The position numbers and the translations under genes were made by a program. 64,000 nt of DNA. Origin: Setoptus koraiensis (taxonomy: Eukaryota > Animalia > Arthropoda). The stretch lies in NCBI GenBank assembly GCA_048013815.1, contig CM106586.1:17174001-17238000 (forward strand). Reading direction: 5' to 3'. Positions within the stretch are counted from its first letter, which is position 1. The number at the start of each line of letters is the position of its first letter. Below are positions 20,936 to 22,759 of the stretch, piece by piece. Under the pieces are notes generated by a model that saw only the letters and a program-made list of their open reading frames with translations, did not search any database and was not told where the DNA came from.

Positions 20936-22759
20936 CTATACGCTTGCTTGTTTTTATACAACTTTCATACTGTTGTCATACACTTTCATACAATATAATA
21001 ATTTAATTAATAATTTAATAATTTCCGTTCGAGAGAAACGCATGTGTGAGAGCGCCAATGTCAAATGAAAATAGTGTTGGACCAAATGTGTATTTTGATG
21101 TGCCAACTTTTGAAGGGCGGGTAAGCACATTCTGTCAAATGTGCCAAGGGGTTGTCCCATTTTAGGGTATTTTCATTTTTGGTCTTCGATTCTTGAAAAT
21201 AGGGTATGCATGTTGCCTGAAACACCCGATACTGTGTTGCAGTGCCCTCCGGTGAACAACAACAGGTTTATGTGTGGCGAACTGTTTACGGCGAATGGCA
21301 GCATGGCGTCGTTTGCACACATGCAAAGGCACGCCACTCAAATTTATCATTTCGCGCCCCTAGGCTACATTTCACAAAGTTACACTTTGCACAACAATGC
21401 CAAACCGAACCTCTCAGGCACATTTGCCACTTCTGGCTTCCGCTAGATTTGTCCCAAATATTGCACAGAATTGCGATTGCATCAAGTATTGGCGCCAATA
21501 CCGTAGGTGCACGCAAACACCAAAGAATCGGTAATATTTCGCTACAAACCAACTCATCACTGCAGACTGGCATCAATCTTTTGTTCACAATTGCTGACAT
21601 TACCAGATAACATACAGTAAAAGTGATTGTAAAATTACGCCATGGACAACACATTTTACAAACAACTGAGAATTTTCGACCAAAGGCTCAAATCGCTGGA
21701 AAAACATTATGATAAGGTTCAACGAGAAAGTGTAAAATTGCACAAGGATCTGGAGCAAAATCTTAGTCTCAAGAATACCTTGGAGGATCGAATGAGAAAA
21801 CGTGTCGAGGACATAGACAAACTGTATGCCGCAAAAATGCGCGAATGCAAGGCTCAGTATGATCTGTTTCAAAATATGTACATAGCTCGGGAAGAAGAGC
21901 ATAAAAACCTCAAGGATTACATCAATAGCTATGAAATGGAGGAGAAACAGAAGATCGACAAGGAACCCGAGACTGCTATCAAGAAACAATTCGGCAACTT
22001 GCATTCATTGCCTGCCAAATTCAAAGTAATCCAAGAGAAATACAACAACTTAAAAGAGTTGAATGAACATATATCCCGTGATCTAGATCAGCTCATGAAA
22101 ATATTGAAAATGTCACGTGAATCAGGTAAGATGAACCCTTTTTTGCACTTCAACACTAACCTCTAATACGTCATTGATAACAATTGGTAACGTTGAATCT
22201 CGCTATTAATTTTCCTTTCATCGAAACAACAACTCATTAGTTCAAAAGGCCAAAAAATACCGTGATGCGTTTGAAAGAACAAAGGATCATCAAGAGGCTA
22301 CAATTGAAAGACTACACAGGGACACAAATCAACTGAATGTAGTCATTTCACAATACTGTCTGACTGATTGTATCAACGATAAAATCATATCCAATGTACG
22401 TGCTAAATGTGCTTTTAGCGTTGCTGATAATGATGAATTTACTCTAAATACTCTCAGAAAGCACAAACAAAAGCAGAGCAAAATAATCGAATTGTTGACT
22501 CATAAGCAAAAAGTTAATGAAAGAGATAACAGTATACTTACAGTGGAAAACGAAAGTGTTAAAGGACTGATGAATTATTACACTGATGTGATTAACAAGG
22601 CCAATCAAAATCGATACGTGGATGTAGAATTTTAGTGTGAATATCGATCAACAACTGATCTAAGAGGCGAAAAATCAATTATAGAAATCAGACGGTCGAT
22701 ATATATATTATCAATTATTATATAAAGTCCGGGGACATCGTTTTTATTATCATTCTAAC
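20715..22759. repeat. Inserted inverted duplicate (2,045 bp) of 48556-50893
   Basis: Reverse-complement alignment by eye. Boundaries: ...GATATCATTTCC (20715/50893) and CATTCTAAC (22759/48556). TAAC lies at both 20711-20714 and 22756-22759. Confidence 0.95.
21642..22635 (+). CDS. Uncharacterised coiled-coil protein, copy A (in the insert), exons 21642-22125 and 22241-22635, 292 aa
   Basis: GCCATGG start with an in-frame stop upstream at 21630. Phase-1 intron of 115 nt (CAG|GTAAGA...ATTAG|TT). Exon 2 translated by hand is open to TAG 22633-22635. E/K/L-rich, heptad-like. Confidence 0.85.

Follow-up and report, generated by a model that had tools for sequence, protein, structure and literature searches.

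The window analysed here, a 64,000-nt stretch of contig CM106586.1 of Setoptus koraiensis, contains a PABP gene and, in inverted orientation, a second copy of its 5′ part joined to a large open reading frame (ORF). An earlier note on this DNA observed that the copy has kept a candidate initiator and lost the A-rich tract of the PABP leader, and proposed that the fusion gene makes use of PABP transcription while escaping PABP autoregulation. This raises the question of whether the missing tract reflects a release from translational feedback or has another cause. The premise of the proposal, namely that PABPC1 represses its own translation through an A-rich 5′UTR element, is well founded for mammals (PMC4691835, PMC6986143), and earlier work on the binding of PABPC1 to its own A-rich tract and the repression of its own synthesis appears in the reference list of PMC3559699.

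Comparison by blastn identified an inverted duplicate of approximately 2 kb, with the copy at 20715-22759 and its donor at 48556-50893 (Table 1). The duplicate comprises the neighbouring gene, the intergenic promoter, PABP exon 1 and 16 nt of intron 1 (20715-20730), the last of which follow the copied exon and are read in frame into the recipient ORF, yielding a continuous chimeric ORF. Pfam comparison of this ORF identified an RRM_1 domain at residues 17-67 and no match in the remainder, beyond the PABP-derived part, while language-model features provide a lead that the recipient part may resemble arthropod EPTP-repeat proteins (score 0.93). As the stranded former start codon and the codons that follow it are in frame with the hydrophobic core that resumes on the other side of the insert, the signal-peptide-coding start of the recipient has been split by the insertion. 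Structurally, the chimera represents the capture of a promoter and first exon, with a duplicated 5′ segment, a parent gene that has been kept and an in-frame fusion. New chimeric genes such as Sdic and jingwei of Drosophila likewise arose through duplications that brought a promoter and first exon to another gene. The mite locus resembles these in that the parent is retained, the duplicated 5′ segment is fused in frame and the event is young and lineage-specific. Unlike in Sdic and jingwei, however, the insert is situated inside the signal-peptide-coding region of the recipient, whose own start codon is stranded, the captured control region is heavily remodelled, and no transcript of the chimera was seen in the RNA-like run (X7) described below. 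When the first 196 residues were used as query, no chimera-type protein was found among the matches listed, which covered at most 78% of the query and belonged to RNA-recognition-motif families only; the protein collection searched is apparently without this mite's species, and it yielded no 100% PABP match either.

Additional features can be observed in the duplicate and the recipient. The divergent neighbour of PABP is a 174-amino-acid coiled-coil ORF (21642-22166 on the plus strand and 49135-49659 on the minus strand), of which 173/174 residues are identical between the copies and which matches no Pfam family above the cut-off; this gene may now be present in two intact copies. A 69-nt in-frame GT...AG stretch (20662-20730, minus strand) begins at the splice donor copied from PABP and spans the hydrophobic core of the recipient signal peptide, such that splicing would remove the core. 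Furthermore, a proline-rich tandem repeat of PPPALIS-like units is located at ~15980-16260 (minus strand), in the C-terminal third of the recipient protein.

Table 1. Features of the donor PABP gene, its inverted copy and the recipient ORF, and donor-sister identities.
Feature	Position in window	Donor counterpart	Strand	Remarks
blastn block	21318-22759	49983-48556		97.85% identity
blastn block	21207-21319	50287-50177
blastn block, promoter-proximal conserved block	21012-21073	50428-50367	-	92% identity
blastn block	20981-21004	50439-50416
blastn block	20715-20957	50893-50651		95.5% identity
Copied PABP exon 1	20731-20935		-	68 codons + 1 nt
Chimeric ORF	15008-20935		-	1975 codons, continuous; ATG at 20935
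Stranded former recipient start	22760-22800		-	ATG at 22800 + 13 codons, in frame with hydrophobic core resuming at 20714
20-mer, copy	21021-21040		-	20/20 identical to donor
Putative copy leader	20936-21040		-	105 nt: 20-mer, AT-rich stretch, duplicated GTATGAAAGT, 22 nt homologous to end of donor leader
Replacement of donor 50288-50366	21074-21206		-	133 nt; blastn
Donor PABP gene	50673-52967		+	Exon 1 50673-50877, intron 50878-51147, exon 2 51148-52967
20-mer, donor	50400-50419		+	0 mismatches; candidate initiator of the earlier note
Donor leader without counterpart in copy	50440-50650		+	211 nt; holds TCATTT, CAGT and most of the A-rich tract
A-rich tract	50563-50672		+	64.5% A; A-runs of 7, 7, 4, 4, 9, 7, 5, 5
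Donor conserved unit, proximal promoter and leader	50343-50672		+	89-94% identity to sister vs 55-67% for neutral proxies; start judged by eye on the alignment, segment measurements beginning at 50367
Donor-sister identity, proximal block	50367-50439			89.0%
Donor-sister identity, leader	50440-50562			94.1%
Donor-sister identity, A-rich tract				92.6%
Donor-sister identity, upstream	50177-50366			66.9%
Donor-sister identity, far intergenic				54.7%
Donor-sister identity, intron flanks				58-64%
Donor-sister identity, exon-2 third positions				66.7%

The donor is a two-exon PABP gene, of which exon 1 encodes the first part of RRM1 and exon 2 contains three RRM_1 matches and an MLLE domain. When the exons were queried separately in a protein search, the closest named relative was the PABP of Fragariocoptes setiger, an eriophyoid mite (72% identity). 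The 20-mer begins 273 nt 5′ of the donor ATG at 50673, in agreement with the spacing of ~270 nt previously given. Apart from donor 50563-50672, no 110-nt stretch on either strand of the window reaches 60% A. The inclusion of this tract in the mature mRNA is evident from X7, the only run that was judged RNA-like by its behaviour, no run being recorded as RNA, and from which contig positions only were taken. A spliced 2353-nt contig of this run carries donor-type letters, with exon 1 fused directly to exon 2 and preceded by 205 nt of leader, and reaches 183 nt past donor 50651, to ~50468, thereby including the A-rich tract. The parent PABP leader is ~200-330 nt long, strongly constrained and A-rich in its 3′ half. 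As in the mammalian PABPC1 element, the donor tract is located in a PABP 5′UTR, consists of several short oligo(A) runs with other bases between them and is strongly conserved, although the two were compared by composition and position only and PABP binding in the mite is putative. Its position, composition and constraint make the tract a good candidate PABP feedback element. No Rfam family matched at the gathering score across the window, nor at E<=1 over 50300-51200.

Comparison with relatives provides the polarity of the difference between donor and copy. A sequence 93% identical over exon 2 (P0001) is located on L001, a sister-species genomic contig of 5.5 kb, which carries a complete donor-type leader including the A-rich tract; as such, the tract was lost by the copy and not gained by the donor. 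Judged from the donor-sister identities, constraint on the leader is much stronger than at synonymous sites (Table 1). An AT-rich stretch followed by an A-rich tract, in a donor-like layout, is also found on genomic contigs of three more distant genera (L006-L008), while mRNA contigs of two other eriophyoid genera (L002-L005) have leaders of 220-245 nt with the same order of AT-rich stretch and A-rich tract. From a bare comparison of the two copies, and from nothing further, it could be argued that the long A-rich leader arose in the donor after the duplication and that the copy represents the ancestral short form. This reading is refuted by the long A-rich leaders of the sister, the three more distant genera and the mRNA contigs, and can practically be dismissed. 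Eriophyoid mites keep a strongly constrained A-rich PABP mRNA leader, a solid result that extends the known range of the element.

The 20-mer occurs exactly twice in the window, where no occurrence is expected by chance, and in the copy it begins 105 nt 5′ of the ATG at 20935 (minus strand), as previously estimated at ~100 nt. The copy and donor leaders close with 22 homologous nt. Between these two ends, the AT-rich stretch carries ~20 extra nt, with AATTATTA present three times, and 23 nt (20958-20980), a partial repeat of the preceding 10-mer GTATGAAAGT, stand where the donor has 50440-50650, a segment left unmatched by all blastn blocks. The A content of the copy leader is 41%, with a single A5, and the A-rich element characteristic of the donor and mammalian PABPC1 leaders is absent. 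The loss of the tract described in the earlier note is therefore upheld, while the strand has to be corrected, the copy being located on the minus strand, and the loss was not a clean deletion, given the extra AT-rich nucleotides and the local duplication. Three ATGs (20989, 20979 and 20968) are found in the copy leader, such that in a transcript from the copied 20-mer all three would precede the main ATG and give rise to two short upstream reading frames, and the main ATG has a T at -3 as a result of an A->T change on the copy lineage.

Independent DNA data were consulted by placing the Logan contigs of four runs on 17600-23400, three of which (X1, X2 and X5) are DNA runs from three studies. 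A 292-nt contig over 20908-21199, encompassing the entire copy leader, shows 0, 0 and 1 differences in X1, X2 and X5, respectively, and a 487-nt contig over 20346-20796 spans the proximal junction in X1 and X2 without a branch. No pre-insertion joint was seen in the contigs of the three DNA studies, and the insertion looks fixed in X1 and X2. At the distal junction the contig reaches only 30 nt into the insert, too little to count as a bridge. As contigs of three studies carry the copy-specific leader, the latter is not an assembly artefact. A mis-join giving rise to the short leader, or to the chimera as a whole, might be suspected from the haplotype mosaic and odd depth of the upstream block in the short-read contigs, but is largely refuted by the leader contig in three studies and the proximal junction contig in two, and we regard it as extremely improbable.

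The mosaic extends over 21336-22759, where the contigs of X1, X2 and X5 each form one haplotype combining copy-type and donor-type letters, at a depth of only 1.1-1.5 times single-copy. This mosaic may have arisen through gene conversion between the two copies, through differences among strains or through errors in the consensus of the window. As the count of fixed differences in this block is uncertain, the age of the duplicate is likewise uncertain; over ~1.4 kb, X1 shows just two sites at which the copies differ. The short-read contigs are interrupted at an (AAC)n run (20302-20345).

The changes in the copy are not restricted to the leader. The donor span between the divergent ATGs is 1013 nt in length, and the copy aligns to ~530 nt of it. 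Donor 49984-50176 (193 nt) is missing from the copy, a further segment has been replaced (Table 1), and only ~95 of the roughly 330 conserved nt are kept. When the sister is used to polarise the differences, the proximal block shows three copy-lineage substitutions (21060, 21047 and 21045) against none on the donor lineage, and two of the three lie within a GCGCATGCG palindrome that donor and sister share without change. The residual leader and exon 1 show eight copy-lineage against two donor-lineage changes, with three amino-acid changes in RNP1 among those of the copy lineage. Taken together, the proximal block, leader and exon 1 have accumulated 11 copy-lineage and two donor-lineage changes (binomial p = 0.022), while the pieces of leader and promoter that the copy kept show 6/84 copy-lineage changes, compared to 8/1364 for the upstream block (Fisher p = 6.6e-5).

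Two observations can be added on this region. A dispersed repeat of ~69 nt (21140-21208) is present within the copy promoter region and has no second copy in the window; its summed depth is 789-956, where single-copy DNA has ~165, and on both sides it adjoins four or more different flanks in X1 and X2. The palindrome GCGCATGCG resembles NRF-1/Ewg sites, and when considered as a general promoter motif was uninformative, with one occurrence in the window against 2.6 expected.

The deletions, short local duplications, repeat and substitutions are crowded near the breakpoints, a pattern more in line with a messy event or relaxed constraint than with a tailored loss of the tract. We give about an even chance to a messy duplication or relaxed constraint, rather than tailored feedback escape, as the explanation for the loss. 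Under this explanation, a young inverted duplicate of ~2 kb landed in the 5′ part of a large EPTP-like gene, where its signal peptide is encoded, and the control region of the duplicate was broken up through the 193-nt deletion, the repeat-bearing replacement, the AT-rich repeats, the local duplication, the 211-nt leader deletion and the clustered substitutions. The loss of the A-tract would then be one part of a messy remodelling, brought about by template switching or repair during the duplication, or by relaxed constraint afterwards. Any mRNA derived from the copy would be without the putative PABP-binding leader, yet would have three upstream AUGs and a poor -3 context, and we infer that the activity of the copy is weak or absent. 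Against messy remodelling, the intact 1975-codon ORF and in-frame fusion fit a working gene, and the copy retains the 20-mer together with most of the proximal block. The clustered changes could instead reflect positive selection on a new leader, and the insertion may be too young for arguments from decay, as the upstream block seems almost identical between the copies in other strains. As a young duplicate, the locus shows which elements are lost when constraint lifts or a rearrangement is messy.

Polypyrimidine (TCT/TOP) initiators typify genes of the translation machinery, and vertebrate PABPC1 is a TOP mRNA. The 20-mer resembles such initiators in having an 8-nt pyrimidine run, which is present in both donor and copy; unlike in these, however, the run is interrupted at two sites in the sister, whose 20-mer has two changes, both within it. 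The TCT/TOP-type reading of the 20-mer is weakened by these changes. The 20-mer has been retained as earlier described, and its role as initiator is putative. The X7 contig stops at ~50468, 68 nt 3′ of the point where the 20-mer begins, and the initiator-like TCATTT (50442-50447) and CAGT (50457-50460), both within the stretch missing from the copy, are unchanged in the sister. A start anywhere in ~50400-50468 is possible. An upstream ATG in the donor (50431-50433, plus strand), which a donor mRNA beginning at the 20-mer would include, opens a 16-codon frame just past the 20-mer. The sister has no such ATG, a mild argument for a start downstream of it. Placement of the start by homology to the more distant genera gave three competing promoter-block alignments with scores of 10-19, and was ambiguous.

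These observations bear on the proposal that the copied PABP promoter is active from the 20-mer and drives the chimera at a housekeeping level, with the loss of the A-tract, possibly selected, freeing its mRNA from PABP feedback. The identity of the 20-mer in the copy, the 92% retention of the proximal block, the in-frame fusion with its long intact ORF, the tract being a constrained part of the PABP mRNA and the documented autoregulation through the mammalian A-rich 5′UTR (PMC4691835) are all in line with this proposal. It has to be set against the lack of conservation of the pyrimidine run in the sister, the location of the conserved initiator-like motifs within the lost stretch, the three copy substitutions within the donor's most conserved block together with the repeat just upstream and the 193-nt deletion, the three upstream ATGs and T at -3, and the lack of a copy-type exon-1 contig in X7. 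We consider the proposal doubtful. Furthermore, as the recipient gene never had an A-rich element, the notion of an escape from feedback adds little. If the copy is active, the locus would represent a clean natural promoter capture in which a translational feedback element has been dropped, and the two leaders could be compared in one organism.

The contigs of X7 show that some transcription of the recipient ORF occurs, with 0-1 differences over 17600-18567 and 19315-19633. No X7 contigs were seen on 19634-20730 or 20958-22388, which include the junction and the copy leader, in this one run with its patchy coverage of the recipient ORF, and the sole exon-1 contig is donor-type and spliced to PABP exon 2. 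As X7 has only patchy contigs on the recipient ORF, the missing copy-type contig proves little. The stranding of the former ATG ~2 kb away, the heavy damage to the copy control region and the very young age suggested by the two differing sites in X1 could point to a recent knock-out, in which the recipient has been cut off from its native promoter and start codon, the copied promoter is inactive and the ORF survives intact only for want of time to decay. The X7 contigs on the recipient ORF, however, indicate some transcription, and the insertion looks fixed in two runs, with the pre-insertion joint seen in none of the three DNA studies; we consider a knock-out unlikely. It is more improbable still that the chimera is a working new gene, which encodes a secreted EPTP-like protein under the PABP proximal promoter and from which the PABP-binding leader has been purged by selection. 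If this were true, the locus would constitute a natural experiment in which PABP transcription is uncoupled from PABP translational feedback, and the clustered substitutions in the retained leader and RNP1 would be adaptive.

A further conserved element is located in intron 1 of the donor PABP gene (50926-51055, plus strand) and was not included in the duplicate. It shares 93.8% identity with the sister, compared to 58-64% for its flanks, and has counterparts at ~3380-3510 of L001 and ~2265-2390 of L007. No Rfam family matched 50926-51055. An ATGATGA (C-box-like) and a 23-mer, CCTTGGATTACCAAGGGAGCCCA, are invariant within the element, and a CTGA (D-box-like) lies close to its 3′ end. In appearance the element is a C/D-box snoRNA with the PABP intron as its host.
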